64,000 bases of DNA from Marsupella aquatica (GCA_973895155.1 OZ316899.1:1139573-1203572), one strand, 5' to 3'; positions 6-21,636 are shown, numbered from the stretch's first letter. The notes: generated by a model not told the origin, from the letters alone. Program-made: numbers and translations.

Positions 6-1143
6 TTGAGACGAGTGTACATGGGGAAGCAGGCTTCACCCAAGAAGCAAGAGGAAGAGATGCTGCTATTGCGAAATCAGCTACGGGTGCTGAAGGTGGC
101 GATTATGGAAGAGAGTTCAGAAAATGAACTGCAGGAGTACATTGAAACGGAAGACCTATTACACGCAGCGGAACTAGAGGAGGCACATAGAGTAAGACGG
201 CTGGAAAGAATCAAGTGGCTGGGGGAGGGAGAGGAACCCTCTCGATTTTACTTTGCAACGGTAAAGGCAAAGCGGGAACGGGAGGCGATGAAGTACCTAA
301 TGTTAGAGGGAGGGACGGTGATCACAGATGCGGGGATGATAATGAGAGAAGTTGAAAAGGTGTGCATTGAACTGTATGCCCCCGCTGCTCCCACTACTCA
401 TGAGAGGGGAAATACTCTTAGGGAACGTGGCAGACTGCTAGAGCACACTTGGGCTTCTTTATCCATTGCGGAGACTGCAAGGCTGGAGGGGCTGCCAAGC
501 GCTAAGGAAATCCAAGAGGTGCTTTGGGTACTCCCAAAAGATAAAGCCCCTGGCCCGGATGGACTTTCGGTGGAGGTATACCAGGCGTGTTGGGAATTCA
601 TGAAAGAGGATCTGGTCGCCATGGTACAAGAGTTCTGGCTGACTGGGAAGCTGGCAAGTGGGATCAAGGAGGGGACGATTAAGTTCATACCCAAGAAGCC
701 TGATAAGAGAATGCTGAAGGATTGGAGACCTTTAACTATGCTGAACACCATATACAAGCTGATTGCTAAAATATTGGCACTTCGATTAATCAGGATTCTG
801 CCACAACTTATCAGCCCGTAGCAGACGGGCTTTATCCCCGGGAGAAATATTTTGGAAAACATTTCGCTGGCCTGGTTAACCTTTGACTGGCTGAAAAATA
901 GGAAGCATGAGGCACTATTTCTTAAGCTAGATTTTGAGAAGGCGTTCGATAGAGTAGATCATGATTACATATGGGAGACGATGCATCTGTTAGGCATAAG
1001 CAGCAATTTTATTAAATTGGTACAGGCACTGTTGTCAAATTCAACGTCAAGGATTTACCTAAATGGGATGGTATCCACTGAGATTGAACTTAAAAGGGGA
1101 GTCAGACAGGGCTGTCCCCTATCACCGCTCCTGTTTGTAATCT
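6..1143 (+). pseudogene. L1-like LINE ORF2 reverse transcriptase, 5' part (interrupted by CACTA insertion)
   Basis: Motifs KAPGPDG, WRPLTMLNTIYKLIAK, KLDFEKAFDRV and RGVRQGCPLSPLLF are present. One in-frame TAG at 819-821. The frame resumes at 19498. Confidence 0.95.
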
Positions 1144-1154
1144 CACTAGAAGAA
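1144..1154 (+). repeat. Left CACTA terminal inverted repeat
   Basis: CACTAGAAGAA, a perfect 11-bp match to the reverse complement of 19487-19497. Confidence 0.95.
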
Positions 1155-2918
1155 ACCCACCCATTCTGAGACCCTCCCCTATGTGACTTGTGCGAGACCT
1201 TCATAAATATGCGACTCCAAGTTTGTGGGTGTCATGTTAGTTACATCATACCAACTAAGTTTTGGTGAGGTTGTGGGAAGTCATGCTTACAACTTTATCC
1301 AATGTCGCTATTGTAACACTGGTAAGTAAGAAATAGGTAAGTTATGTTAGTTACTCCACAATAGTGCAATATGAATTGGACATCATTTTTTAAAATTCTG
1401 TCAGCATGCATACCCCATTAGCCAATTTCAGATGCCAATCCCTAATATGCAACTCCCGGTGCAACTACATATTGCACACTCATGGTTCAATAAGTCCAAA
1501 TATAATGGGTATAAATATGGGGGTTTTCATCAGAATGGTGGGTACTTTCACTTATAATGTGGATTCATACCTGACTATATTTGGCCTTGTTCTTGACCAA
1601 AGTGCACTCTCCCCACATTGAACTTTTTGCTAAGTCATTTGCATTGGTTCTTTTATGTCCAAACCAACCTGTTTGCTAAGTCACTCGATGGCTGCCCACA
1701 TGTGAGGGGTACTACTTTCCCTCAGGGTCAGTGTACCTTGGAGGTTGGTTTTGCGAGAGATTTTGGGGGTACTACTTGCCCTAAGTGTTCAGGGTCAGTG
1801 TGCCGCAGAGGTTGGTTTTGCGAGGGAAATTGGGAGTCGACGACCTTCATTCCAGCTGCACTCTTCACGAACTTCCTGCAGGGTCGTTTGAAAGTGTTTG
1901 AGCGCGACTGGACTTTAGGGTGCAAATGTGTTTAGGATTGGGCCTGCTACGAGCATCAGTGTGGAGGTCTGCCAATCAGTTTTGAGGGGAGTCCATTGTC
2001 GCTTTTCAACCTGCTGGTGAGCTAAGCTGCTATTGAGTTTCAAGTGAGAGCTGCCGACTTGGAGTTGAGCTCTACGAGGTGGTGCCTGAGTGTACATCTG
2101 CTCGACATACTTTTGGGAGCTCGTAGTTGGTAGGAGGGCCAAGTCATTGCACAAAAAGTTGCAGCCGTGACAGTGCAAACTAGCTAGGCGGAGGCTGGTT
2201 ACTGCAAGCAAGGCGGAGGATCACTGCGAGCTAGGTGGAGGAATGCTGCGCTGCTTCACATTGTCAAGAGACATGCTACATCGGCCCAAGTAAGGTTGCA
2301 TTGACCTATCTATCTCTATGTCTATAAGGTCCTAACCGATAGTCTGCTTAGTGAGGTCATGCTTTAAGCTACATTTGTGCAATTGATTGTGTCCTGAGAA
2401 GCTTAACCATCACATGGGGGAACGGTAGCGAGAAAGGAGGGGTGGAGCCTGATGGTCGCCAAATATTCAAACAGGGTCGCCTTGCTCGATATTGGTCTCA
2501 TTGTTTTTTGCTACGGTGTGAAGGCGGCGGAGCTTCTAGTCTGACCTTTGAGTGACTTGCGGTGAGCTTCTAGTGTGGCTATTGAGGTCGACTGACCTGC
2601 ATTGACCGAGCTGATCAACCTACTGAGCTGCCATTGGGAGTTGGAGGTTGTGTTGCGTTTGATTTTGGAGTCGGGAGGCTAAATGCGATAGCTCTGTTCC
2701 GGGCTCTGTTCAGCTAATGCAGACATTTCTGCTCAGGAGACGAGGTAAAATCTATCGACCTTCAAGCTGCTGTGAGGTTCATTGAAGAGGGAGGTTGAAT
2801 GCCTAGCGCTATGAGGTGAGGAAGGAGAGTATGGCCAAGCTGCATCTTTAGGGGTTTTGCTTCAGCTTCAACCATCTTTCATCGTCGTAATCGCTGCTCT
2901 CATCTATCGCTACATGGT

Positions 2919-3962
2919 GGATTGCTGCTCTGCCCTTTTGGCATGGGTCGCCGACCTGCTGGATGCTATCTCCAGTTTAAAAACAAGTCATATCCTAAGT
3001 CCCGGTGTTGCAGTAGTGTCCCCGACTCTAAGATGGAACAGAGTATCATCTTTCTTGTTTCCTGCTGTTGCTGATGTATGTCTGTTCTCCCCTATTTTTG
3101 CTTACTGATTGGTCTCTCCACACTTCTTGCTTGACTTGCTGCTTCCTTCAATCCCCTATCGCGGACTCACCTCGTGGCTGCAAGTATAGTTGTCTAGGTG
3201 ATGTATGCATTGCGTGTTTAGGGTCTAGGTGACATCGTTGCTGAGCAAAATTCGCGAGCTGCCTAGGTCCATTGTCGAATGCTGCTTCCTTCAATCGCCT
3301 GGTGCCTGCTGTTACAATCGCCTGCTCAATCATGCACCCAATCTCCTGGAGCTCATTCGCCTAGAGCTTCATCCGTCAGATTCAAACTATTATTGGACCT
3401 CCCTATTGCCCGAAGTGTATACACTCCTAGCATTGTCGTCCCAAACTGCAAAACGCTTCTCCCTGTTCTGTCCTCGTGCTTCACTATTTGTATTCAGGTG
3501 TTTTTATCAGTTTCAGAGGGGAGGTCATTGTTTTTGCAAGTTGTTGGTGAGCTAAGCTTCCGCTGTGTGTAGGTTTAGGGAGTTGCGCGTGCGAGCTAAC
3601 GACTTGGACCTGAGGCCACAATCTTTTAGGGAGCTTGGAGTGGAAGCCGACAACTTGGAGCGGGACTTCAACTTGCTATTACTAGCTACCTTGGACAAAG
3701 GTGACAGTCAGTAGCGCAAAGGTGAGACTCGGTAGTTTTAGCGGATTGCTGCTCTGCCCTTTTGCCATGGGTCGCCGGCCTGCTGGATGCTACTAGCAGA
3801 TTAAGAACAACTCATATCCTAAGTCCCGGTGTTGCAGTGGTGTCCCCGACCCTAAGATGCCACCCGAAATCATCTTTCTTGTTTCCTGCTGCTGCTGATC
3901 ATGTATGTATGTTCTCCCCTATTTTTGCTTACTGATTGGTCTCTCCACACTTCTTGCTTGAC
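2919..3962. repeat. ~220-bp internal direct repeat (2919-3135 and 3743-3962)
   Basis: Both copies run from GGATTGCTGCTCTGCCCTTT to CTCTCCACACTTCTTGCTTGAC with scattered substitutions. Confidence 0.9.
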
Positions 3963-5802
3963 ATGACTGTTTTGCTCCTCCCTGTATCAGAACATGCCTT
4001 GTGCCCCGTGCTCTGGCAATGGGGTGGGGGGGGTGAACAGACGGCCTTAAGGTCCACTAAATTTATAGGAACCGTGCAATCGTTCAGCTGATTTTAGCAG
4101 CAAGTTCCCTTGCTTTCCCCTGTTTTTGCTAAGATCCCTCCCCACTAATCACATGCATCTTTTACTTTTCTCGGTGGCCCGTGCACCTGCCTTCCTACTT
4201 TCGTTCTTATGGACTTTCCTTAGGTTTTCTTTCACCTGATTTTGGACTTTTTGCTCCGGTGGAATCTGTCTTGACAACTTGTGTTTGTTCTAATTGTTAA
4301 TATCTCAAGAGGGTCGTCAACTAAGCTCACAGGAGTCAAAGCTAACTACAAGCTAGCAAATAGGGAGAATGCTCCCAAGTCGAGTCAGGAGGAAGTTACT
4401 AAAACTAGACCTTCAGAACTCTCAAAACTGGAAAGTGAAATTCAGCCTGAGACACGCAGCTGAAGGCCACAAGGATAACTATATGGCCACGCTGTCCCTC
4501 ATTCAAGTCCAAAGTCCTCTTCAGATTGTCTGAACTCCTATCTGAACTCCTGAACTGGATGAAGTCCTGTCTGAATGTGAAGTTCAGATTGACAATCTCA
4601 AATGGCAAGTTCTGAACTCTTGTCTGAACTTCATCCACCCTTCTAAACTGGGATTTGTGCTATGTGTATAGACTCCACATTGTTGCTTCTCCCTTTCGGG
4701 CCAGCCCTCCTTGTGAAACGTAGGAGCACGATCATGGCACTTACACATAGTCTGACATTCAAAAAATGCTACTTCTCAGCAGCATGTTTCGAGTAGTTTG
4801 CCTGTGTGTTGAGCCCGGGGTTGAGCCTAATTATTTGTTTATTGCTTTAGTAACATGCATGGCCAATTGGTTTCTCTTCATGTAAAGGCAAGTTTTTGAA
4901 ACTTACTACTTGAATTGGTGGTTTGAATTTAGTTAAGTGTTGAGAAATTAGCATTCACACTAACTATTTTTCTTTTGTGATTGAGTTCTCTTTGCTATTG
5001 AATGTATTGAATAATTATTTCATCACAGAAATTTTCAGAACAAACACGGAAGCACCCGGGGGCTGAGGATTGGATATTGAGGCTGAAGACATTGAGGTAA
5101 TAAACTGGGTGTGGTTCGGGTGACAATGTTAGCAACTGGTGCTTCTTCAGGGGAACTTCCCATGTGCAATTTATCCACACATGATTGACTTTGGTTCTTG
5201 CTATTTTTCTTTTGGTGTACTCTTCAGTTTGGTGTCACTCTATCCTTTCCTATAGCCTCGAAATAGGAACACACCTGCTTAGTGGTCCCCAATTGCCCAA
5301 TGATTTATAATGACTGTGTCTAGGCGATGTATGCATTGCGTGTTCATTCCAGAAGAATGAATATGTACACTTTGCACAAACCTGGACAGATTTTGAATGT
5401 TATTTATCTGAGTTTCTGTTTGTGAGCTCTGACTTGGAGCCTTAACATTTGTGTTTCTGTGGGGTTGAGCAGAGTTTGTTCCGTCCAGAAGCTGCTGTAC
5501 TGAAGTGATCGGCCTCCGGCTTGGAGGTGAATCTTCAATTTTTTCTGGATCCGAGTGACTTCTGTCCAGCTGAGTTTTGCTTTGTCGGGACGATTGTGTT
5601 TGGCTAAGATGCTAGATTGTGGCTTGTCTTCTTGCTTCCAGCTTGTGTATATTCAATTAATAGAAGTTGGGAACGAAGTGATAATTGAATTTCCTTATAT
5701 TAAGCATCTTGACCTAGAAACTCAATACATAAACTCCTGGAGTCCCTCGGGACATAAAATGAGCCAAATTGTTTCAAAATTGGGAACCTGCACCCGCACT
5801 AC

Positions 5803-6142
5803 TCAAACAAATGTGTTGGGCTTGGTGGCCTTGTAAGTCGTCTTTAGCTTTCGCGATGGAGGTTGAATCTTGCGGTACGTCAAGGGGAACTTGATCTTTG
5901 AATCATGGAACTGCTTGGTACTTTCTCGCTTGCACAGAGAGACAGGGACTGTCGTAGTCTTGATGATCTGGATGCAAGGGAACCGAACTCTATGACAAGA
6001 AGCCATCTCATCATACATCTGCTGTGTGGTTGTTTAATGTGGTATCACGATATTTCTTGTACATGTTGGGATAACCTGTACAACTCTGATACCTCACCCA
6101 GATACCGAAGTTCTTAATTGTGGTGGGCTTCTTTTCGAAGAT
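5803..6142 (-). pseudogene. RPL18A: Captured last exon of 60S ribosomal protein L18a (eL20), frameshifted
   Basis: [37 protein letters not shown], then a shift near 6022-6031, then [72 protein letters not shown]. Preceded by a CAG splice acceptor (6145-6143) and followed by a T-rich 3'UTR-like stretch. Confidence 0.92.
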
Positions 6143-7151
6143 CTGGTAGGCACATTATTCAGCATTTGCTAACTTCGAAACTAGAAGGGTAACACATTAA
6201 ACAACAGAGAAACTCACAACATCCTCCTTTGGTCCTTCAGAGTCTGTACTTTGATTATGAAGTTTGACTGAGTTTCTGTTTACTGAAAGAATGTGACTGT
6301 GTAAGAGTTCCGTTTGGCAGTGGATTGGTTGAAGCACTTCATGCTAGTGTGTTGTCCACAGCTCTTCAACCAGCTTTCGTCTTCCTTGTCTTTCACCACT
6401 TACGATGACATCAATTCAGCTAAGACCATAGAAGGTTCCAAAGCATCTAACTTGTAAAATCACATTTTGTTACATCAAGGACTAAGGTGTTCGGTGCCAA
6501 AGGAGACAGCACAACAAACACGCTGAAAAGACTTCAGGACTGGGTTCAACAAGGTAGTGAAGGTGCTTAGAGCCATAGTAAGTATGCATTCTGTATCTTT
6601 CTTTGTTGATGTGAGCTTGTGCATAATGGGAGTTGTAGTTGGCAAGAGTTCCAAATATGAATAGATCCAGAAGTATGTGATCATGTACTTGCTCTATAAA
6701 GTTCTGAAGATATAAGCATTTTCTGTTAGACCAGGCAACTTGGGAGTTGGAAAGTGTCACCTGCATCTGAGGGGCTACACCGGGGGCATCAGTGGAGGTT
6801 CACTTGCACAACACGACAACCAGTGAATTTTCTCTCTGCTGCAACCTGCAAGGTGAGACTTTCGGTCTTTCTGGATGAAAAAACAGGATTTTAATATGAT
6901 TGATATACATGTCCGTCGAGAATATGGGTTTATCACCAAGCTCTTTGTCTTAGGAAACTCATAAACTCAGAATCAAATATGTACTATGCACGTTTCATGC
7001 TATGTGTATACTATGACCTGTAGTTGGAACCAAGACAATGAGTGGGAACTGATTAGTTTAGGTGGTTGCTGTTGGCGAGGCAAGTCGACCTCTTGCTCAC
7101 CTTGCTCATCAAAGGACGTGAACAGAGGACATCACAACGAAAGCAACACTT

Positions 7152-7601
7152 ATGGTGAGGACCCGCAACGCTGAACATGTGCGACTTGCACGCAAGGCAG
7201 AGATGTTGCACCTTGAGTATGTCAGACTTGGGATCCTTCCAGCCCAGTCTGCATGGTACTTTGAGTACCCTGTTGTTTCCAGGAACAACTACAGCCGGCC
7301 TCTACCTGCTTCAGTACCCTTCCCGACATCCTTGGTATTTGTGTCTCTTGTACATGACCCGCCACAAATTAGGTGCCAAGGGTGTGTACACAGTTGCCAA
7401 TATGACTGTCCTGCCTGTAGGGCTTCTGGCCCAGAATTGGATGACCGTTCTCTTGGATGCCGATTTTTGCACAGAGCACAATGTATCATCTGGAACCACT
7501 CGCCATCCTGCAGTGTGCCTGGTGATGTCACTTGTCCTGCCCTCCTAGACCCCACCACCGGTGACTTTGGTGTCTACACATGTTTGGATCACATGCTCTA
7601 G
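7152..7601 (+). CDS. Cys/His-rich hypothetical protein, possibly Zn-binding
   Basis: ATG-initiated 149-aa ORF with CQGCVHSCQYDCPAC and further Cys/His clusters. Family not recognised. Confidence 0.4.
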   Translation: MVRTRNAEHVRLARKAEMLHLEYVRLGILPAQSAWYFEYPVVSRNNYSRPLPASVPFPTSLVFVSLVHDPPQIRCQGCVHSCQYDCPACRASGPELDDRSLGCRFLHRAQCIIWNHSPSCSVPGDVTCPALLDPTTGDFGVYTCLDHML

Positions 7602-8218
7602 AGGACCACTTGTCACACCGCATGCACAGACCAGATACCATTGACCTATAGCTTAACACTCTGACTTCAACACAGAGGATATTTACTTAAAATTTTGATG
7701 TATGAGCAATTTTGGGTCCAGGGTTTAGGGTCAACAGTACATAACTTATATCCTATTATGCCTGCACTAAGCAAAATATCCTAATTCAAGAGGCTAGCAA
7801 ACTCGCATAAAAGTCTCTATTGAAAGACTGCTTTCATGACTGCTTTAACCTGGTGAACATTGCAACGTTCAATGAATTAATGGGCCATGTGATAACCTGT
7901 AAAATGTGATTTATGCATCACTTATTTGTCTCAGCCACTATCATAGCCTATTTAGGATGTATAAATTTCAACCCTTATGACACTGCTTCATACCAATCCT
8001 CTTCGAAGAATGCCTGTTTTACATGTCACGACTATTGTATGTGATTCAAATGCATGAAATGTTGTTGCAGATCTCCTTTGGTGAATCATAGCCACAATTA
8101 AAATTGAGGTGTTGGTGGAGCAATTGTATTAGGGGATCAGGTTTGTGTGTGGGCTCAACATACCAAAAGTATGTCTGCTCTGCATCCTTGTGTGGCCATT
8201 CCAATTCATTGCAGTAGC

Positions 8219-8362
8219 AAATGCCTTTGTACCTTAAATGCTAAATATATTTTACTTTCTGTGCAGTCTGCTAAATTGTAGAGTCTATCTAAATGCCTTT
8301 GTACCTTAAATGCTAAATATATATTACTTTCTGTGCAGTCTGCTAAACTGTAGAGTCTATCT
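8219..8362. repeat. 72-bp tandem duplication containing a splice-acceptor-like tract
   Basis: AAATGCCTTTGTACC...GTGCAGTCTGCTAAA(T/C)TGTAGAGTCTATCT occurs at 8219 and 8291. Confidence 0.9.
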
Positions 8363-8373
8363 CATGCGCAGGC

Positions 8374-9054
8374 ATGGCACGACCTAAAATTCAAGCCAAA
8401 AAGCGTGTGACAGAGGTGAGAAACACAGGTGTACTTGGGGCAGATGCTACTAACTTCTCTGCAAGTCAGATTTTCCAGAAGGCAGCTCATTGTTGTGCCA
8501 TTTGTGACGATGGTGGGGGCCTGGTCATTTGTGAGGGCCCTTGCATGAGGCATTTCCACCTCAACCCGGAGTCTGACCTTGCTGTAGAAAACAACTGTCC
8601 AGGGGTGGGCCTCCCGTCAACACACCAGGGAGACTGGATGTGCACTGATTGTTTGGAGAAGCAGGCTAAGTGTGCACAGTGTGGGAAGTTGGGGTCCTAT
8701 GAGGGCTCTGTTGATGCTGCAGCAAATGTTAGGAAATGTCCAGACCGTTTTCGTGTGAGATTTTTCTATTTTGAGTGTTTGCCTGTTCATGCCACAGCTT
8801 GCCCACTTCATAGGTGCAAGGCATGTGGTGAGCATGATCATGAGTACTGGACTGACATAGTCCACTGTGCTAGGTGTCCCACCATGTGGCACTATCATTG
8901 CCTGAAAGATTGTCAAGCAGAGGGTTATGCTTGTGATAGAGAAATCTATGATCACTCTGCACATGGTGTTGATCGATGGATATTTTATTGTCATCGCCAT
9001 GCCATTGATCCTACCTCGCGCACTCCTGTGAGAGATCACATATCTTGGCTGTGA
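8374..9054 (+). CDS. EDM2-like composite (NSD-type) PHD-finger protein without other domains
   Basis: CAICDDGGGLVICEGPCMRHFH, WMCTDC, CAQCGKLGS, CPLHRCKAC, CARCPTMWHYHCL and C-terminal YCHRHAIDPTSRTPVRDHI parallel the EDM2 PHD region as I recall it. Basic N-terminus KIQAKKRV. Confidence 0.8.
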   Translation: MARPKIQAKKRVTEVRNTGVLGADATNFSASQIFQKAAHCCAICDDGGGLVICEGPCMRHFHLNPESDLAVENNCPGVGLPSTHQGDWMCTDCLEKQAKCAQCGKLGSYEGSVDAAANVRKCPDRFRVRFFYFECLPVHATACPLHRCKACGEHDHEYWTDIVHCARCPTMWHYHCLKDCQAEGYACDREIYDHSAHGVDRWIFYCHRHAIDPTSRTPVRDHISWL

Positions 9055-9646
9055 AGCTGAACATTGTACATGCACAGTGCACCTGATGTGGATGTACTAT
9101 TTTTGGAGATTGCAGAGATTCCAATTTTGAAAAGGAGTTGGGTAGGCGAGTTTATATAGGCAGCACTTATCTTGTGCTCTGGCGTCAGTGGCTGGGTACA
9201 TGCCTATAAAAACTTATCCTTACAAGCCTTCTTGGAAGTATTTAGGCTGAGTGGTCATTTTCATAAACACTTTCATCAGACTGCTAAATTAAAACAGGAC
9301 TTCTAAGTTGTAAGCGTATAAATTATCAGGCATGCGATTAATCAAATTGCCCTATAAGTTTGTCATTGAACGTATCCTCCTTTACAACAAAATATGTATG
9401 TGCCATGACAAGTTGGTTGCACTTCATTTCACCTTTGATATGGATTTTGTAGTATATATTCAAACAATGTCCTGCATCCGTGCAGGTGCCTAGTACGTAT
9501 TGTTCACACATCCCTTGTACCTATCAAAATCGGACCTGAGCACCAGTGGGCCAGATCAACTCAAAAAGCAGGAATTTTGTTGTCCTTGTATTGTCAGGTG
9601 AACCCATTCTTCCAAAATTCACTGTCATCACGTAGGGTGTGTGTAC

Positions 9647-10519
9647 ATGGAGCCTGGGAAACGTAGAAAGTGTGACCACCCAGCAGTGTTTACAGGGGTC
9701 AGAGCCATTTTGGTCCATGGCCAGCATGGGTTGACCAAAGTGCATTGGCCAACTGTACAGAAATGATTCTCTGAGCTCCATGGCACTGTAGTTCAGGACA
9801 TCACTCCAGAGACTACACATGTTGTTGCAGGGACATGGCTATCAGTGATAAAGAAGTGGTCATGGTCCTACATGAATTCTGCAATTACTAAGCAAGGCCT
9901 AAAAGTAGTTGAGGCCTCTTGGATCACAGATTCCATAGCACATCAGATTGTACAGGATACTGAGCAATATGAGCTGTGGGAGGATGAAGAAGCTACTGCA
10001 TCAGCTTGGGCTGAACAAGAAGTCTGGGAAGCAAAGGCACGGCTTGCTGATGTCCAATATGGACCTGTACTCAACAAAGGACAGAGCTCTAGAAGGCTGA
10101 AGAGTATGTTGGCTGAGGAGACGAAGCAACCAACCCCCATTCTGAAAGGGCTGAGCATGGTATTTGTGGAGGCGGGAATTGGAGAGGTTAAGTGCAAAGT
10201 GTACAAGTCCACGGTGCTTGACCTAGGTGGGACAATGGAGGAGAATATAACAGAGGACACCACTCATGTCATTACTAAGTCATATCCCAAAGCCTGCCGC
10301 AAGTTTGGGAAGGGAGACATTCGCTTTTATGTCATGTCCCATAATGTGTTTGTGGTTTCATATGCTTGGCTTGTGGAATCAGTAGCAGCTGGGAAGTGTC
10401 AAAACCCAATGGACTATGATCTTTTTGAGGCCTGGCCACGGAAGGGTCAGGATCCTTACAGAGAGGACTATGAGACAACAAGTGAGGAATGGGTCATTAG
10501 CGATTCTGAATCAGAGTGA
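9647..10519 (+). pseudogene. Tandem BRCT-domain protein (DNA polymerase lambda-type BRCT), one internal TGA
   Basis: ATG at 9647 (MEPGKRRK). BRCT1 VFTGVRAILV...THVVAG...SWITDSI is interrupted by TGA 9764-9766. BRCT2 is ILKGLSMVFVEAGI...LGGTMEE...THVI...KFGK...SYAWLVESVAAGKCQNPMDYDL. Confidence 0.8.
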
Positions 10520-11051
10520 GGAGTAGTAGCATCAGTTTGGACACAAGTTTTTTTGTATAAATCAGATCATTGAAATAAATGTGATCTTTGAACTAATGTA
10601 CCTTGTTATGGTTGGTGGCAGTTGGGCTTATTTTACTGTTGGCGGATTGTTGTTTCCTGCTGCCTGGGGGTGTCACTGTAAACGTACTGGGTGGGCTCAA
10701 ATCTCAGCGGTGAGATATCTGATACCGCTCTCACACCTATGCCTATGACTATACATGATTGGACTCTGATATGGTTATGGGTGTACATGCAGAGGCGGTA
10801 CATTTGAGGACAGCTGTGGAGGTGGTGACACCCTCAAACATTGAGGAATTTTGTGTCATTCACTTGACAATAGGTACACTACTCGCAAACCTGTTTTTTT
10901 CTTTTGGGGTGGTTTAGGGTTTGTGAGAATTTATTACACGTTATGTTAACTCTTTTGGCACATACAGTCAGGGATATATGGAACACAAATACCACCATTA
11001 GGCATCCCTGTTCACTGCTGTCCATGACTGCAGAGCTTCCAGCCTGTTACA

Positions 11052-14000
11052 ATGCACCCTGGTCACCACCCTCCCCAAACCCAGCCCAGGGCACAGGCAC
11101 TGCCTTTGCATCATCCCACAAGGATATCACGCCATGATAATAAGCTTTGGCAGCGTGAAAGGTTACGAACCAGACTTTCAGGAGCCAGTAGGATGAGATG
11201 TCCTTGTGCAATCTGCCAAGGATCCCGTACCAGGGGTCTGAATGAGGTTTGGCGGCATATCGCGGTTCATGGAAGAGATCCACGACATCGAGTTTGGAAT
11301 GATCCTGTAGAGGAAGATTCTTCCGACGAGGAGTGGAGGTTAGAATTTGATGCTGCCAATGCTGCAAGACGGGCAAGTGAGGTTCTGCCTGGTGCATTTG
11401 AAAATGTTGTAGCTGGTCTCTGTGGGTTGTCAGCTCTCCAACGGGATGGTCAGGCAGCACCACGTGACGAAGGAATTCATGTGGAAGAGATGGTGAGAGA
11501 CATCTTCCAAGACTTGGATGCATTTCATGATGGGCTGGACAACGAAGAGGATACAGCTGCAGATGCAAGTGTGCCCCCTGTCGAAGAGCCTCTTGATGAG
11601 TTTGAGATAGGGCAGGAAACCCCTGGGCATGATGGGATGTTTGGCTCTCCCCTGCAAATACAGGAAGGCAGGAAGTCTTTGTACCCCGGTAGCAAATGTT
11701 CTAAACTGGGATTTGTCATCATGTTCCTGAACATTTGCGGCAACCACAATGTCCCCAACGTTTTGGTTTCTGAGTTGTTGGCATTCTTGCAAACAACTGT
11801 GCTACCAGATGGTAATATTTTGCCCAAGAACATGTACGAGGCAAAAAGATGCATATCTAATCTTGGATTGAACTATGATTCAATCTATGCCTGTCCTGAT
11901 GGGCATGTTCTTTTCAGAAAGGAGTATAAAGAATCGTTGACATGCCCTAAGTGTGGGAAGCACAGGTATCGGAACTCAGGAAAGTCTATGGTTCCCGCCA
12001 AGGTACTTCGTCATTTTCCACTCATTCCTAGACTTCAGCGGATGTTCAGAAGCCGTGCCATCTCGGAGGTGATGACTTGGGCAACTGACAAGAAAAGTGA
12101 TGATGGGCTACAACGACATGCTGCAGATTCAAGGCAATGGAAACTCATAGATGAGATGTATCCCGAATTTGCTGCTGAGCCGAGGAATGTCAGACTTGGG
12201 CTGTCATTGGATGGGGTAAACCCATTTGGAGACAAGAACAACAAATTTTCGTGCTGGCCTGTAACTATTTTGAATTATAACCTTCCTCCTTGGATGACTA
12301 CAAAGCGATTTTTTGTTCTGATGGTCCTACTGATACCAGGGCCAGACAGTGTTGTATCTGCCAACATAGATGTGTTTCTGGCTCCCCTAGTGGAGGAATT
12401 GAGAAAGCTTTGGGAGGAAGGAGTTCTCACATATGATGTCCTATAGAGGCTTGGGAGGTTAAACCCATTCATCCTTAGAGCCATTGTCATTCTGACTATA
12501 GCTGACTACCCAGCCCATGGGATGATATCAGACCAAACAACAAAAGGATATTGTGCTTGTACTATCTGTGGGCACAATGTCACCAGTGAGTACTCCAGAG
12601 CCCTGCAGAAAGTGATATACATGGGCCATCGTCGTTTTCTGAAGGCAGATCACCCTTACAGAGAAAGACAGGCACTGATTGCACACTTTGGCAATGAGAT
12701 TGAGCAACGTGGACCCCCGGCACGAGTGACCAAAGAGGAGATCAGGCAGTGGGGAGCACTGAGGGATGACTATATCAAACGAGGGGGCAGGGAAGATGGA
12801 GTGAGTGATCCAATAAAGCGATATGGTGTAAAAAGACTGAGCATATTGGACTTGGAGCTCAAGTACTGGAGGGTAAGCCTCTTGGAGTTGATGCTAATTG
12901 GGATACATGTTTTGGTTCAGAGCATGTGCATTCATTTCGAAGAGAGAGACTAAACTTGAGGCATTTCCTGACGCTTTTGCATTGCAACGATGCAGGAGTT
13001 TGAGCCAAGCAAACATAACATTGATGTTATGCACATTGAAAAGAATATTTGTGAGAGTCTACTCAGATTCTTGTGTGGAGAGAAAGACACTGGTTCAGTG
13101 AGATTGGATCTTGAACAGAGGGGAATGAAACCCCATCTTTGGTTGAGGCCACATGCCCACAGAGCTGATGTGCTCTTGAAGTACCAAGCGCCCTATGTTC
13201 TGACAGACACAGAGTGGGAACTATTTGTGCAGAGGTTGAGTTCTTTGAAGGTTCCTTCAAACTATGGCAATGCTTTCAAGAAGCATATCATGACTAGAAA
13301 GCTTGGTAGTATGAAAAGCCATGACTACCATATGTTGATGCAACAGGTGTTGCCTTTATGCCTGAGGGGCCTGTTGCAGAAGCCTGTTCGTACTGTGATC
13401 ATGCGACTCAGTGATGTGTTTCGTCATATTTGTGTGAAGGTTTGGGATGAAACACACTTCCCACAACTGACAGAAGATGTCGCTCAGGTGCTGTGTGACC
13501 TGGAGATTTATTTTCCTCCCGCATTTTTTGATGTCATGACCCACCTACTTGTCCATGTTGTGGAAGAGCTACACCAATTTGGGCCTGTGAGTGCTCGTTG
13601 GTTGTACCCTTTGGAACGGTACATGAAGCTACTCAAAGGTCACGTGAGAACATATTACAAACCTGAAGCAAGCATGGCTAAAGGTTACATCAAGGATGAG
13701 ACTCTGGGATTTCTGACCGAATACATAGCACAATATGAGCATGTGAAGACCAGGGTGTGGAATTCTGATGAGGAGGAAGGGGTGATAGGTGAAGTACTGG
13801 AAGGGGCTGCAACCACAAAGAACCTGACCATATCTATGAGAGACTTGGCACATGACTTTGTATTGCACAACACTGTGGTGATGGAACCCTGGATACAGTG
13901 AGTGCATACATGTGCTATAATCCAGTTCATGAGCTTAAATGTTGTGTTCGTGTGGTTTTCTCCTTTAGCCTATTCATGTTTACCCAAGCTAATGCTGTGT

Positions 14001-14780
14001 GGTTGTTCGTTCAGGGAGTATGAGTCATTGAAGGCGGCCCATCCCACTGCAGGAACAACTTTTCCAGGTTTCATGGAGTGGATCAGAGTGGCAATTAGAG
14101 AGCATCACGAGACCCACCCAGACATGGATGCAGATGTTTACCTACTGTCTAATGCCCCTAGCCTGAAAGTGAAGACTTACAAACGGATGAGAGCATATGG
14201 GAATCACTTTCGAGTGAAGGATGGTGACAGTGCCTACAGGGTGACGAATGACTTCGGGATCATCACTGTATTTGAGCAACAGAGCCACAATCACGATAGG
14301 GCCTGGATGGAGATGGGATATGTGGGAGAATTAGTTGACATATGGGCTCTGGACTATGGGGCGGTGTCCAGTCCTGTGATTCTTATGAAAGGTTCATGGG
14401 TGCGGCAGGATTGGCTTGGTAATAGGGCTACCATGAAGAGAGACAATGACAGTTTCTTGCTCGCCAATTTCAGAGGGAAATTGCCCGAATGGTCTGAGCC
14501 ATTTGTGTTTCCTAGTCAGGTGGAGCAAGCTTTCTTCCTGGATGTGGAAGACTCCCCAGGTTGGCGTGTAGTGTGTCATAAATAGGCCAGGCAACGTCGG
14601 ATGGAAGGATCAAACCTTGAGTTTCATTTACACTCTCATAGTGCCTTTGATCGTCGGCGTTCAGACCAAGTGCCTGTAGTTCATGATAGCGGGGACTTCA
14701 TTCCTGTGACAAGGGTAGATGCATTTGCTGAAGGAGGCGAATTCAGAGATGCAGATGCCAACAGTGTGCCTGTACCATGA
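11052..14780 (+). pseudogene. CACTA TnpD-like transposase (transposase-associated domain, Transposase_21, DUF4218, DUF4216)
   Basis: Motifs CPCAIC, LSLDGVNPF, HNIDVMHIEKN, KSHDYH, FFDVMTHL and WLYPLERYM. Introns at 12873-12995 and 13898-14014. Premature TAG at 12444 and 14583. Confidence 0.93.
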
Positions 14781-14934
14781 GTAATGTGAATTGTTTGCAT
14801 GGACATTAGTGAGGGGAAGGATGTGTAATAAAGTAATTCTGAAGCAACACAGATGTATGGATGGATGCCTGGTGATTGTGGTTGCATTGTGTTATACGGG
14901 GTGATCATAGATGACATGTTTTTGTGGTCCAGTA

Positions 14935-17900
14935 GGATGGAACAGAGTGACACAGAGATGTGTGAGTATGAAAGGAAAGCTATGGAACAACGAGCATACG
15001 TGAAAGCCAAAATCGCAGAACTGGATCTGGAAAAGGATGTGGCTGAATTGTAAGGGAACGATTCTCAACTACACCCCTCCGCTGAGTTTGTGTGACATGA
15101 ATAGTTCAATGTGGCACTGAAATTGTGACTGTATTCTCATATTGGAATGTCGCAGAGCCACAGCATTTTCAAAGAAACAAAAGGAGTACGCAAGAAGGGT
15201 GACCAGCACTATCTCTGGGCCTGTGCGTCGGAGTGACAGGTTGAGCAAGAAGGTCGTACCTACAATGGCAGAATGTGGAGATGACATTGATGCTGCACAG
15301 GTGGGTGCAGACACTAGACAAGAAGATGCAGATGATGAGTATTTTCCAGAGGAAATGGATGAGGATGGGGGTTATGAAGATGAATACATTGCAGAGCAGC
15401 CCCAAAAGAAACAGGTAAGTAGTTTTCCCAACAAGGTTTTGAGTTAAAAACTCTTGTTTAGAGGTTTCATATGTTCAGTACTACACATATGTACCTTGCT
15501 TAGTTCCTGACATTGTAGTTGGTGATGTGATGCAGCGTCCTGCCAGTTCTGTTTTGCCTTCGAAGCCTGTGCATGCACCATACCAGCAGGGGGGGCTGAC
15601 CTCTGATCAAGGTTGGCAAGGTGGTAGTAGTGGTAGATCCCAGGCTGGTGCCCAATACTATGGCAGGGGGCAAGCTCTAGGTTATGCCCGTGGTAGAGGC
15701 AGAGCAGGTCCAAACCCACAATCTCGTGGGTATGGACGTCCACCTCAACCATGGGGATGTGAGTATATATCTATATGCCAGTTCTTTGTGAAGGCATGGC
15801 ACTCCTGAATTTCAGACTGCATATCAATTTTTGACATTGTTTGGGATGTATTGGATTCAGACAACATGAAATTCTGTCCACCTGCCATGCAGGCAGATTC
15901 TGCCCAACCTGATTGGGCAAATGCTAGTAATGATCAGTTCCAATGTCCACAAGGACAGACATGGGTTGAACCAGGTTGGGAGGATGGTGGTGGGTCGTGG
16001 AATGAACAAGGTTGGGAAGGTGGTGAAGGTAATTGGCAGGGATATCAAAATACAGTACCTACAAACGCTGGAAGAGGGGCAGGTAATGTCTGATCTTGTC
16101 AGCAATGGAAGAACTCATTATATCTGGAGTCCATTCACGTGGGGGGGACTCTGCACATGTATAATGATAGAAAATGTATGTGTGCAGGTTGGACAGTCGA
16201 ATCATCGACTCAAGTATTCACTAATGCCCCTATGCAGATGCAGCACGGAAGGGGGACAGGTATGTTGGTGAATGTTCAGTTGTTTTCCTACAGTTTGTAC
16301 TTAGTTTTCAGTACATATGTTTGCACACACATACCTAGAAAGTGACATCATCCGGCCCCTGTACTAGGCTGGACAGGTGGTCCAGGGTCGCAACAATTTC
16401 AGAGTGTAGTCCCTGCACAGGCATCTACAGGCAGAGCTACAGGTATGTATGTTTGAAGAATTTTTCTTGAAGTGAAGCATTGAATGTTGCCGTCATCCAT
16501 TCTGCTATATGTAGTTCTCAAGCATGAATGGCATTGTATTTTCCCAGGTGGCTTCAGAACCCCAGGTAGGGTGAATGAAGGGGTGGCCAATACAACGCCC
16601 AGTACTACCGAGAGCAGTGCACAAGGGGAGGTGACAAAGAAAGGGAACGTAAAGTTGAATGAGAGACAATGGGTGGATGCTGAGTGTCCTCGCAAGAACC
16701 GATGGCATGCTGATTTGAAAGCTAAAGTATTGCGTTGGTTAGATGTGAGTGTTATTAATTTTAAAAAACAGCATCCAAAAGATTGGAAGACTGTATGTGA
16801 AAATGTTGCTGCCAAATGGAATTATGTGGGCAGTGATGATGGCGTGGACATAGGTTGCCTAGAGAGTACAGCAGGTAAAATCATCAAGCAAGAGAGGTGG
16901 AGAATGCATAAGGCTTGGAAGGAAGGTGGGGAGAAGCCAGATATGCCTCCACCAGCCAGTTGTGATAATAAAGTGTGGGCAAGGTTAGTAGCTTATTTTG
17001 TAACAGATGCTTCAAAAAAGAAGAGTTCACAGATGACCGAGGCCAGGTTGAGTGTTCAGAACCCTAATCTGACAGGAAGGACCGGCACTGCACCGACAGC
17101 TAAACGTTTGGTAAGAATGAATGGCCTAGCTATGTAATTTATGCTACACTATGTACTGTTTTTTAGTGTAAACCCATACATGTAAAATTTGTTTTTTAGT
17201 GTACGTTCCCTGAATATTGATCGATAACTTGTGTTTGCCATGCATGTGCAGAAAGCCCAATTGGGGCAAAGCCCTTCAAAAGAAGAGTTGAGGGCTGAAA
17301 TTGTGAACACCCGGGCTCAAGAGGGTGCATCTGAATCCTCCAAGCATGTAAATTATATGAGTTCTGATTGGTAATTGAATGACCTGCGTTGAATTTCAGG
17401 TGTACACTGTATATAACATTGATTGTGCATATATTGCCCAACATTTCATATGGAGTGATTGAACCTATACCCCTGTGTCATGTAGGGAGGTGGATCTTCA
17501 CTTACAGAGATAAGTGGTCGTTTGAAGGCTGTCGAAACATGTCTTCCAGAGATCAATGAACGTTTGAATTCATTGACTGACTTGTTCCATGTGAACTTCA
17601 AGACATTAATGGAAGCTGTTGTGTCGGTGAGAGATAAAATTGATTCCAATTCTGCAGGAGTTCCACCATCACCACTTGAGGTGGCAAAGTCGATGCACTC
17701 TTCTGGCATGCCAACGACATGTAGGCTTGAAGGTAAGGCCTTTACAACTGTGTGGGATATGATTATTAAATGTATAGTTTGAATTGACATTGTTTGTTGA
17801 ATGTGTTATTTTTAGTAACATATATTGTGGTTGTTGTGTCCATAGAGAATAAGACAGGTGCTACAGAGAAGAAGTATGAGAACCTGGCAAATACTCGCTG

Positions 17901-18642
17901 TAATTTAGAGGCAACAAAGTTGCAGTCTGTAGAAGCAACTTGTTTGATAGAGGGCAGTCAACCATGTTTGGATGAGGATGACATTGGCAAGGGAGTGGAT
18001 GATATCAATGTTGGGGCAAATGAGGATATCAGCAAGCATGACAATGATACCATTGAGCCAGATTCATGCTATGTAGATCTTGACTCCATTGCAGAGATAA
18101 ATGATTTGCAGAATGTATCATTCTCAATGACAGGTGTGCCTCTTGTTGAGATAAATCCAACCAAAGAGTTAGTTGGTATGACACTCCCAGGTGATGAACC
18201 TGCTACTATGACAGTCCTAACAGAGGAACCTACTGAGCCTAGCTTCACTACTGTGAAGAGAGGAAGCATGCGCACATGAAGCAAGTCTGCTGGTGGGAGC
18301 AGAGCCACGTCAAAGGTTTCATACAAACCTCCAAGAATGGTGCTGGCAGAAAGATCTAAGGTGGAAGTGGGGAAAGTACCTAATGCTGAGGGACAAAGTG
18401 GCTTGTTAGCTCTTGATGAGAGTGGAACACGAGTAGGATTTGGCAGAGTGCAGGTTGGTTCCACAACGTTCCATGGCAAGAGGATTCCCCCAGGTTATTC
18501 AGTAGTGTTAGTCACATTACTAGTGAAACCTAAAGCTATCCTTCCCATTCCAAACACAAATGATGATCCTCCTCAAAAGACACTTGGAGATGCTGCAGGT
18601 TCTTTGGTATTATGGCCAAGCAAGTTCATAGAGGATCCATAA
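14935..18642 (+). pseudogene. Multi-exon CACTA TnpA-like gene (Transposase_24-like middle, Tnp1/EnSpm-like C-terminus)
   Basis: VWARLVAYFVTDASKKKSSQMTEAR exon (16484-17137) and terminal FHGKRIPPGYSVVLV...GSLVLWPSKFI exon (18337-18642). Many GT..AG pairs. Exact exon chain not resolved. Confidence 0.75.
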
Positions 18643-19139
18643 CAATGTCATGCCATTATTTGTTTGTAGTGTGAGTCATGTTATGTAGATTTTAGATGTC
18701 AAGAAGCAGTACAAGAATCATGTCCTCTTGGAGATTCATAGTATCATGCATGTGCTTTCAGTTATCTCATCCTACAGTCATCAATTATGAGTTCCTGTTT
18801 TGTCTGAATTACATTGATCACATTGTAAACTATTCCATTGGAATTCAAATGATCTTCATTTTTTAGCAAGATTGTGATTGTGTTTAATTCTTATGAATGT
18901 TTTATGTAGGATCTGCTTATATGATGCTTTGTTTCATGTGGATGTCATTCATGCTATGTTCATTTCTTGTATTCAATGTGTTATATTTCTAAAGTTAGAA
19001 CATCAGGTTTCTATGTATTGTAATGTCGAGTGCTCTCTCTCCTTATGAACTGTCCCTCTGTGTTCATTAGTCATGGTTATAACTTGCATGTGAACCTAAT
19101 TAGTTATAAACATGAGTATATAGAGTCCCAAATGGTTCT

Positions 19140-19470
19140 GTTGTGTGACGCGGGCCAGGGTCTCCATTGGTCTCTCCTGTGACACTAAATGGTCACACGC
19201 TAGTCGTTGTTGAATGCGGGTAAGTCATGTATGTGACTTACGATGTGACTCGCTGAAGTCATATTGCAGTCACGTCGAAACAAGGCTAGACTCCACAATA
19301 AAGTCACAAATCAATCACAAATGGGTATCAAGCAAGTTGCAAAGCCCAGTATCAATAGTGACTTCCATTTTTTGGTCTCAACTTTTGCAACTCCAAGGGT
19401 CACAGCGTGGGTCAAGTCACGTTGAGTCACAATGAAGTCACATGAGCCAAAATGAGTCACATATTGCGGT
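19140..19470. repeat. CACTA subterminal repeat cluster (GTCAC/GTGAC in both orientations)
   Basis: Dense TGTGAC, AGTCAC and GGTCAC copies just inside the right TIR. Confidence 0.75.
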
Positions 19471-19486
19471 CTCAGTTCACCTCGGA

Positions 19487-19497
19487 TTCTTCTAGTG
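19487..19497 (-). repeat. Right CACTA terminal inverted repeat
   Basis: TTCTTCTAGTG followed by the TSD TCT. Confidence 0.95.
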
Positions 19498-21636
19498 TCT
19501 CCACGCAACCGCTAATGGACTTCATGGATGCAGAACTAGCTATGGGTAGACTTGCAGGGATACAGGTTTCTGAGGCACTTACAATTTGTTATCGTTTCTT
19601 CGCGGATGATTTGGGGGTGTTTATGCCTGCCATGGAGAGGAATTTTCAACAAGTTACTGTAGTAATTGAGTGCTATGAAGCTGCCACGGGGGCCCGACTC
19701 AACTTGAGGAAATCGATAATAATCCCGGTTGTTCTGGGGGACATACCGAGATGGCTCAGGGACACGGGATGTATGATCAGTGGAAGGGGGAGTTACAGAA
19801 ATACCTTGGGGCTCCATTAGGCGTTGACTTGAAGACTAAGCAGCTGCATAGCTTTGTCCTGGACAGAATTGGACAGAGACTATCCTCATGGGCTAACAAG
19901 CTTTTGACATTCATAGGACGATCTCTGCTGGTGCAACACATCCTACAGGCTATCCCGATTTATCACTCCATGTTCCTCAAAGCATCCTCTGGATTGGCGA
20001 GGAAAATGATGGCGCTGTGTAGAGACTTCTTATGGGGATATAATGCGGAGGGGGGACGACGGGTGCCATTGGTATCTTGGGCCAGGCTGTCCCGCCCACA
20101 GACTGAGGGGGGGTTGGGGATTAAGGACTTTAGGAGTCACTCGGATGCGCTGCTGGCTAAATGGTTCACTGGATCGCTTGATCACCTTGAGTCAGAATGG
20201 GCTTGTATGTTTGCGGAAAATTTAAATCTGATCGGATGGACAAATTACAAAGTGGTAAGACGAAACAAATACTCTTTTTTGGGACAAGATGTTACTCTGC
20301 AGTCCGGGGGCACTCCATGGATTGGCTTACACGGGAGGACTTTGGAAGGCATGGGATTTGCTGCGGTCAAATCTGATATTCTGTCCAACGGATAGGATAC
20401 CGGGGAGGTGGTCGGTTGGGGATGTACTCCGGTGCCTGAAGGGCTTTCAGTCTTGGAGCAACGCGGATATGGCTGCTACCACGGTGCTCTATGGGAGACT
20501 GGGTATAAGATGTATACAGGACCTCTGGTCGGAGGACAGACAGGAGTGGCAAAGGATGGAAGGACGATGGGAGCATCTGAGGGGACTCACACCTGAGCAC
20601 CTGACTCTAGGCAGGAATTTTATGGAGGCCTTGTATGAAATTGCACATTGTGAGTGGAGATATGAACCAGGACCCGATTGCTGGTGCTGGGCTGATAATT
20701 CCGCCCCTTTGAAGTGCTTCAAGCACCCCAATCGGAGGGCTTACCACCTACTTCAACCTGTGCTAGGGGATGCGCCCAGTCTGAATAGGACGTGGGGTAC
20801 AGGTAAGACTGAGATGGAATGGAATGTGTGTTGGGCAGGTATGTGGGCGGCAAGCATGTCACTGCGGGCCAAGACCTTCATGTGGAGAGTAATAGCTTCG
20901 GGGCTGTTTACTGGGGTGAGGGCGGTTAAGATCGGTCAAGAAAGTGGGGATTGCAAGCTATGCCCGGGAATACTTGAGTCCAATCCGCACTTATTTATGG
21001 ATTGCCCACATGCACAGAAATGTTGGGCTCTCTGTGCACAAGGCTTTGGGGGAATCTTTGCTGGATACACGGGGGGACTGATTGGGCTGGTGGATTCTGC
21101 AATTGGAAGGCGCCACAACAAGACTGTTATGATGGTAGTACTTTTTCAGATGTTGTGGGCTTTGTGGCTGGGGCGGAATGAGCATATGTTCCAGGTTGAT
21201 GGGAGTAGGAAGTTAGACTTCAGATTCATACTGTCGGAAGCAGCGGATCATGTCTCTGCTGTTTTAATTACATTGCCAGTTTGTAACCGGAAAACTCGAT
21301 TATTGAGGGCTAAGGAAATGATTAATAGGGAACGGATTGCATGGATGAGGCGTAGGGATGTATGGATCACTTCAGGATAGGACAATATGATCTGGGGGAA
21401 TTCTGGTAGGAAGACAGGATGACAACAGTAGCTGCTTGCTTGGTTGTTTGGAGGGGCTGTTCGCATATGTGGCTCTTGTGACCCGCCTTGGGGTCTGGGC
21501 CATCTAGTCTGGGTTACTTTTTGGCTCTTTTTGCTGTTTGGTGCTTGGAATTGTCTTTTGGTTCTGTCTGTGTCCTCTGCCACGGGGTTTTCGTGGCCAC
21601 CATTTAAAAAAATATACAAAATGTTGTAAGGAAAAA
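19498..21636 (+). pseudogene. L1-like LINE ORF2 3' part (RT C-terminus, zf-RVT) plus 3'UTR and A-rich tail
   Basis: FFADD catalytic motif, KYLGAPLG, RAKTFMWR...CKLC...HLFMDC. Frameshifts present. Stop at 21380. A-rich tail about 21605-21636. Confidence 0.92.

Follow-up and report, generated by a model that had tools for sequence, protein, structure and literature searches.

To our knowledge, accessory genes with which plant DNA transposons cope with silencing have been described in very few cases, chiefly VANC of the VANDAL elements and TnpA of Spm. VANC, carried by a Mutator-like DNA transposon, is a lineage-specific accessory gene that probably derives from a captured host chromatin factor and evolves faster than the transposase (PMC13547354). 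In fungal Kyakuja-Dileera-Zisupton and other DNA transposons, TET/JBP genes, which belong to an epigenetic pathway, are found stably beside the transposase (PMC12730594). On the host side, EDM2, which binds to H3K9me2, brings ASI1/IBM2 and EDM3/AIPP1 to introns in heterochromatin; by suppressing proximal polyadenylation there, it promotes full-length transcripts (PMC7529245). Here we describe an 18,354-bp CACTA element in a 64,000-nucleotide stretch of DNA from Marsupella aquatica (GCA_973895155.1, OZ316899.1:1139573-1203572; the whole stretch is called the window, and positions are counted from its first letter). Upstream of its transposase lie a gene for an EDM2-type PHD module and a gene for a protein with two BRCT folds. 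The element is probably a member of an En/Spm lineage with a TNP2-type transposase in which both are inherited, selected single-exon genes, arranged in the order PHD, BRCT, TnpD and TnpA. To judge from their sequences, they look like accessory genes of this transposon lineage with putative functions.

The element is nested as an insertion inside a LINE. It starts with CACTAGAAGAA (1144-1154) and closes with the reverse complement of that sequence (19487-19497); beyond these perfect 11 nt, the terminal inverted repeat (TIR) is imperfect, reaching 30 nt with 73% complementarity, and TCT is duplicated at its outer edges. The interrupted LINE reverse transcriptase (RT) gene occupies 852-1143 and 19501-19820 of the window. 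Joining 852-1143 to 19501 onward, with one TCT kept, reconstructs an empty site with an open LINE RT frame, whose translation contains GVRQGCPLSPLLFVISTQPLMDFMD and, in a longer reading, GVRQGCPLSPLLFVISTQPLMDFMDAEL...FADDLGVF. Together, the TIR pair, the TCT pair and the RT frame regained upon removal identify the element as a CACTA insertion in the LINE and uphold the exact bounds given in the original prediction, which had been made from the DNA sequence alone. That prediction also called the element giant; at 18 kb it is indeed large, although such a size is not exceptional for CACTA elements.

Like En/Spm, the element combines TIRs that begin with CACTA, a 3-bp target-site duplication and a TNP2/TnpD-type transposase (Transposase_21, DUF4218, DUF4216); a putative TnpA-like gene downstream of the transposase and candidate motif-rich subterminal DNA may be further similarities. 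Unlike En/Spm, it has the PHD and BRCT genes upstream of the transposase, and its TnpD and TnpA seem to be encoded by two distinct genes in tandem. The PHD gene resembles VANC in being a lineage-specific accessory gene of a DNA transposon that evolves faster than the transposase and was probably captured from a host chromatin factor; it differs from VANC in belonging to another transposon superfamily and in showing no sequence relationship with it (Pfam hits of the window proteins are to PHD and BRCT only), and an anti-silencing role is putative here. The arrangement also recalls the TET/JBP carriers, but those are fungal transposons with an enzyme as cargo, whereas this plant element carries a reader module and a putative scaffold.

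The PHD gene is intact over its 226 codons, and its own ATG and basic start (MARPKIQAKKR) are as originally described. Pfam assigns PHD-1st_NSD and PHDvar_NSD domains to the protein, which aligns along its whole length with the PHD module of plant EDM2, including the C-terminal TPxRDHI motif, and which has the composite, atypical PHD module of 2.5-3 fingers that characterizes EDM2. In fold searches, an AlphaFold model of the protein (pLDDT 72.7) matches Arabidopsis EDM2 residues 211-429 best (TM 0.63, E 5e-12, 28% identity), with NSD2 and NSD3 next. The N6-adenine methyltransferase-like (ELP) domain, the RFD-like N-terminus, the acidic regions and the Pro-rich tail of EDM2 are all absent from the 226-aa protein. 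Since it consists of the PHD module alone, we regard it as a homologue of that module and not as an EDM2 orthologue.

A profile built from six PHD sequences and searched against 1.84 billion representatives matched 581 proteins. Stand-alone ORFs of 166-245 aa are at the top, liverwort PHD proteins come second, and proteins named ENHANCED DOWNY MILDEW 2 (from Selaginella, Neltuma and Mangifera) third, with E values of ~1e-29 to 1e-31 over profile positions 33-215. With matches to named EDM2 proteins at E ~1e-30 and the fold score given above, the earlier EDM2-like label proves correct for the PHD module. Host EDM2-type modules share 30-35% identity with the window protein, and a maximum-likelihood tree places nine stand-alone PHDs on one side and 35 host modules on the other (SH-aLRT 100, branch length 1.65). 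The PHD protein thus differs from EDM2 also in being transposon-encoded and in belonging to a separate, fast-evolving clade, and its gene stems from an EDM2-like module that was captured once and long ago, which speaks against recent copying from a host gene. Stand-alone PHD-module proteins exist as host-type genes in other plants too, as seen from six metagenome contigs (L011-L016) with short host-type EDM2-like proteins of ~330 aa, likewise starting MARKK, and from a 287-aa Miscanthus protein named EDM2-like (P0027). When metagenomes were scanned with the PHD profile, the matches were to host EDM2 or to short EDM2-like sequences, and no transposon copies were among them.

Comparison of homologues points to purifying selection on the PHD gene. 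The dN/dS ratio (Nei-Gojobori) is 0.30 between the window and contig L001, 0.39 between the window and L003, and 0.28 between L001 and L003, none of them near 1, and in the same three pairs non-synonymous differences per site are rarer than synonymous ones (Fisher p 1e-7, 5e-6 and 2e-9, respectively). Six PHD homologues, down to 36% identity, share every zinc-ligand Cys and His residue without change, as they do the initial MAR and the DHISW that directly precedes the stop.

The BRCT gene likewise begins with its own ATG and a basic stretch (MEPGKRRK). Its frame is interrupted in the window copy by a TGA at 9764. Two intact homologues (294 and 295 aa) have the sequence ...VQKRFSELHG here, with Arg at the site of the stop; the TGA is therefore a CGA>TGA change. 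Pfam finds the second BRCT only, and the first is visible only in an AlphaFold model. In the model of the homologue P0006 (pLDDT 70, pTM 0.41), BRCT folds span residues ~15-110 and ~170-262, joined by a linker of ~60 aa that consists of a long helix and a disordered stretch. Of the tandem BRCT ORF described originally, the two folds and the basic start at an ATG thus hold, whereas the frame is broken here, Pfam recognizes only one of the domains and the two are set well apart by the linker. BRCT homologues stay open over 271-295 codons (271, 294 and 295 aa) at 25-60% identity, and in random sequence 290 open codons would occur by chance with a probability of ~9e-7. The homologue DNA available for a dN/dS comparison encodes a protein of 55% identity, at which synonymous sites are saturated.

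Foldseek searches of the PDB with the P0006 model return Rad4/TopBP1, BRCA1 and non-homologous end-joining complexes, and in the AlphaFold DB XRCC1 and DNA ligase 4 come out on top (E 2.5e-13 to 1e-10). The protein resembles the C-termini of XRCC1 and DNA ligase 4 in its two BRCT folds and long linker. It differs from them in having no ligase or XRCC1 N-terminal part, and the Rad4/TopBP1 and BRCA1 pairs match about equally in the PDB. Against BRCA1 BRCT pairs, the TM score is ~0.25 in this low-pTM model, and PDB matches by sequence are weak (BRCA1 at E ~1e-3). No BRCT subtype is assigned, and a Pol-lambda type finds no specific support; the fold matches are those of a generic twin BRCT, with several types about equal. 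Three of four full-length homologues carry an acidic, Ser/Thr-rich C-terminal tail; a likeness to the tails of CK2 type in XRCC1 and XRCC4 is noted as a lead only. A word-indexed search for a host source gene gave two homologues of ~295 aa only, with no domain besides BRCT.

Pfam recognizes Transpos_assoc, Transposase_21 (E 1.4e-43), DUF4218 and DUF4216 domains in the transposase frame. Its product is 54-64% identical to the protein of contig L024, apart from two blocks of non-homology that open with perfect GTAAGC and GTGAGT donors and close at CAG acceptors. If these blocks are treated as introns, four of the five in-frame stops within the gene fall inside them. The fifth, a TAG at 12444, is a private nonsense mutation, as the codon specifies Gln in L024 and C is present at its first position in every contig that covers it in all four sequencing runs. 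The window copy is disabled by two C>T nonsense mutations, one at BRCT codon 40 and one at transposase codon 465.

The arrangement of the genes recurs in relatives. Of the observations named at the outset as refuting the original prediction, neither confinement of the cassette to a single copy nor a dN/dS near 1 is seen. A diverged relative on a 13.4-kb contig from an ENA metagenome assembly (L009) has PHD (38% identity), BRCT (27%), transposase pieces (45-53%), a TnpA-like region (37%) and the last ORF of the element (50%) in the same order and on the same strand; no TIR pair was found on this contig. On the Logan contig L002, a PHD gene (51%) is followed 353 nt on by a BRCT ORF with no stop in its first repeat. 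The order PHD, BRCT, transposase is thus kept in L009, and PHD, BRCT in L002. On two other Logan contigs, L007 and L008, the transposase follows the PHD gene (43%) after 422 nt, with no BRCT gene between. As this lineage has PHD and transposase without BRCT, the BRCT gene is probably an optional module that some lineages can do without. On a further Logan contig (L006), a BRCT gene (55%) is followed by an F-box-like ORF (1722-2246 of that contig; Pfam F-box E 0.005, below the cut-off).

More distant CACTA elements, 40% identical in the first transposase exon, were found on contigs L019/L020 and L022; in these, the 7-8 kb ahead of the transposase contain neither of the two accessory genes. L022 holds a complete 12,036-bp element (2485-14520 of that contig) with identical CACTAGAAGAA ends, a TAA duplication and neither a PHD nor a BRCT gene; upstream of its transposase lies an antisense protein-kinase fragment. 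These contigs come from microbiome metagenomes of Sphagnum teres and S. balticum, L022 from S. teres (PMC9584203), and are probably moss DNA.

Summed contig depth, a poor guide to copy number, was compared only within each of the four sequencing runs that contain near-identical sequence. In every one of them, BRCT and transposase are covered to about the same depth, and in run X6 a single 1381-bp contig joins BRCT to the start of the transposase at ~95% identity. The PHD gene and positions 7100-7700 reach ~2-10 times the BRCT and transposase depth (5-10 times in X6). This extra depth, at 7100-7700 and 8500-9100, may reflect numerous deletion derivatives, or else another family with the 5' part and the PHD gene in common.

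Several points weigh against the view that the two genes are selected components of the element. The window copy is non-functional for both the BRCT protein and the transposase. Of the nine stand-alone PHDs, only four (the window, P0003, P0008 and P0010) are shown to adjoin a BRCT gene or a transposase, and the other five are classed as transposon-type solely by how long they are and where they fall in a tree made by a quick method. The PHD dN/dS values come from three pairs only, deeper pairs being saturated at synonymous sites. For the BRCT protein, the fold is that of a 60%-identical homologue and not of the broken gene of the window, in a model with a pTM of 0.41, and the match to XRCC1 and DNA ligase 4 is weak (TM ~0.3, identity 12-16%). 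The canonical phosphoserine pocket of phosphopeptide-binding BRCT pairs of the BRCA1/MDC1 type (Ser/Thr-Gly and Lys in the first repeat) is not conserved, since homologues have P, S, H, L or R at the aligned position, as judged by eye from the alignment and not by structural superposition. Lastly, searches of sequencing runs yielded no RNA evidence, the runs that contain the element looking like DNA (tens of millions of ~136-bp contigs, with intergenic depth equal to genic).

The roles originally proposed for the genes, to counter silencing and to steer the repair of excision breaks, are putative. As to a more specific mechanism, chromatin reading by the PHD protein and a repair scaffold formed by the BRCT protein are suggested with low confidence. 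The PHD protein would enter the nucleus and read marks on the tail of histone H3, in the way the PHD module of EDM2 does at transposons marked with H3K9me2. Lacking the rest of EDM2, it might bind to heterochromatic marks on copies of the element itself and favor full-length transcription, either mimicking the EDM2/ASI1/AIPP1 pathway or serving it as a decoy; another possibility is that it guides the transposition complex to chromatin in a preferred state. The BRCT protein may be a scaffold that links the transposase, or the breaks left by excision and insertion, to host repair factors, and would in this resemble XRCC1 and DNA ligase 4 with their BRCT-linker-BRCT ends. A fuller version is more doubtful: that in a bryophyte-type CACTA lineage a truncated EDM2 mimic reads H3K9me2 on its own silenced copies and subverts or competes with EDM2/ASI1/AIPP1 read-through, with an optional XRCC1- or DNA ligase 4-like BRCT scaffold biasing break repair.

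The same evidence of conservation would be expected if the two genes were selected accessory genes of another kind, acting on neither silencing nor repair, a possibility of modest probability. The PHD protein could pick insertion sites, much as the chromodomains of chromoviral integrases choose theirs, and the BRCT protein could bind phosphorylated transposase or TnpA for transpososome assembly. Transposon accessory proteins do shape integration preference (PMC13547354), and BRCT is missing from one PHD-bearing lineage, so that the two proteins would act independently. Nothing separates such target choice from an anti-silencing reading of chromatin, however, and the sole insertion examined, that in the LINE, fits both.

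It is rather unlikely that the PHD and BRCT ORFs are alternative 5' exons of an En/Spm-style unit, spliced to TnpD or TnpA to give reader-transposase or BRCT-transposase fusions. In maize En/Spm, a single promoter serves both TnpA and TnpD, whose transcripts differ through alternative splicing (PMC13547354), and the genes described here are co-oriented, with short spacers (350-600 nt) and conserved GT..AG introns in the transposase. Each ORF, however, has a conserved ATG and a likewise conserved stop right behind its conserved C-terminal motif, so a fusion would need splicing out before the end of the ORF. Among the long proteins checked in the profile search, none pairs this PHD module with Transposase_21. 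No well-supported joint with GT..AG ends was seen in the four runs, a result that carries little weight on splicing because the runs are DNA-like.

Passive transduplication in the manner of Pack-CACTA, with pieces of host EDM2 and BRCT genes as neutral cargo without a role, is highly improbable: CACTA elements are known to take up host fragments (PMC6379663, PMC8903248), the L022 element has its kinase fragment and the BRCT gene is broken in the window, but the ORFs are complete and intronless with conserved starts and stops, their order is kept in relatives with saturated synonymous sites, the PHD dN/dS is 0.28-0.39, identity to any host EDM2 module is 30-35% at most and the stand-alone PHDs form one clade on a long stem. 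Recent passive capture is rejected on the kept order, these dN/dS values, the conserved zinc ligands, start and stop, and the separation of the clade from host EDM2. The element shares with Pack-CACTA the possession of host-derived sequence; it is, however, of the autonomous type, with complete, selected and long-diverged ORFs, and not a non-autonomous shell around a recent, fragmentary, unselected host copy. Recurring order, dN/dS, conserved start and stop, a single clade and matching depth thus bear out the proposal that the PHD and BRCT ORFs, far from being random pieces of captured sequence, are clean and complete, and show that these genes belong to the element lineage. The word domesticated, which had been suggested for them, is wrong, since both genes still travel with the transposon.

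Of the three short ORFs originally placed 5' of the transposase, all are present on the + strand as described, ahead of a transposase that is of the TNP2 type, and the third is Cys-rich. This ORF exists, but its status as a gene is unsupported; it is probably none and is not counted as one. It has no Pfam family and no frame-specific codon signal (the codon-usage score is equal in two frames), and its Atlas recognition score of 1264 is typical of non-proteins (2300 for most real proteins). Searches with tblastn and tblastx of the sequence available ahead of the PHD gene, 3.6 kb in L007 and 2.4 kb in L009, found no homologue. By an arithmetic estimate, ORFs of its length occur by chance about once per 18 kb over six frames. 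Coordinates of all features are given in Table 1.

Table 1. Features of the CACTA element and its borders in the window, with the evidence for each.
Feature	Position	Strand	Evidence or remark
CACTA element	1144..19497		TIR pair, TCT pair, LINE RT frame regained after removal
Target-site duplication TCT, left	1141..1143	.	Matches 19498-19500; removal with the element restores the LINE RT frame
5' TIR	1144..1173	+	CACTAGAAGAA perfect, then imperfect to 30 nt; the 11-mer also bounds the L022 element
Cys-rich ORF, 149 codons, probably no gene	7152..7601	+	No family, homologue or codon signal; region high-copy in DNA runs
72-bp tandem duplication, candidate promoter or 5'UTR region	8219..8362	+	8219-8290 vs 8291-8362, 97% identical
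EDM2-type composite PHD module, basic N-terminus, intact single-exon gene, 226 aa	8374..9054	+	Pfam, profile, tree, fold
Two-BRCT gene, 291 codons, in-frame TGA 9764-9766 in this copy	9647..10519	+	Pfam BRCT, intact homologues, two folds
TNP2/TnpD-type transposase gene, 3 exons, nonsense TAG 12444-12446	11052..14585	+	Pfam, L024 alignment, splice signals
Transposase exons (inferred)	11052-12872, 12996-13897, 14015-14585	+	L024 alignment
Transposase GT..AG introns (inferred)	12873-12995, 13898-14014	+	L024 alignment, splice signals
TnpA-like multi-exon region	15121..18642	+	Weak Transposase_24; homologues in L009, L024
3' subterminal region, candidate TnpA-binding repeats	19001..19467	.	AGTCAC/GTGACT motif enriched
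3' TIR	19468..19497	-	Reverse complement of the 5' end
Target-site duplication TCT, right	19498..19500	.	Empty-site reconstruction

Downstream of the transposase, the TnpA-like region is made up of a basic PRRSDR exon, RGG-rich and GW-rich parts, a Transposase_24-like ORF, a coiled-coil-like ORF and a C-terminal ORF. The Transposase_24 match (16484-17137) is weak (E 2.9e-4, below the cut-off), and the ORF that carries it is conserved in L009 and L024. The last ORF (18280-18642) is 50% identical to an L009 ORF that bears a precomputed DUF8039 hit; hmmscan found no family for either of the two. Between the transposase and the TnpA ORFs, at 15443-16090, lie an RGG/RG-rich segment and a Trp-Gly-rich one (WVEPGWEDGGGSWNEQGWEGGEGNW), and RGG-like segments are found again in L009 and L024. 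GW repeats are Argonaute-binding motifs, and by analogy the GW-rich segment could be a silencing-related part of TnpA.

In the non-coding parts of the element, AGTCAC/GTGACT is enriched at the 3' end only, where 9 of its 39 occurrences in the whole window fall in the subterminal region. The long non-coding 5' part contains a 223-bp direct repeat (2919-3138 and 3743-3965, 89% identical). The 72-bp tandem duplication stops 11 bases 5' of the PHD start codon, and some copies in run X5 have a single 72-bp unit (joint 8235>8324). No 10-12-mer recurs upstream of the genes as a shared promoter-like motif.

The concept of epigenetic genes borne by transposons is already known from VANC and TET/JBP; the combination of PHD and BRCT appears to be new in CACTA elements, going by the literature searched, in which no described CACTA element with it was found, as the original prediction had supposed. 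In full-text searches, no paper combined CACTA or EnSpm with BRCT and PHD cargo, and papers on CACTA and EDM2 did not concern cargo. A 2026 atlas of Arabidopsis transposon products does not mention PHD or BRCT domains.

The CACTA elements of the lineage described here keep a histone-reader module akin to that of EDM2, which in the host works on transposons in heterochromatin, and many of them have a putative BRCT scaffold too. For the annotation of such genomes, this means that stand-alone genes labeled EDM2-like or BRCT may be transposon rather than host genes. If the two proteins act on the element's chromatin or its breaks, they would offer compact proteins (~220 and ~290 aa) with which to study how transposons contend with H3K9me2 silencing and break repair. 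It would also follow, if this is true, that host chromatin readers can be captured by transposons and retained over the long term.

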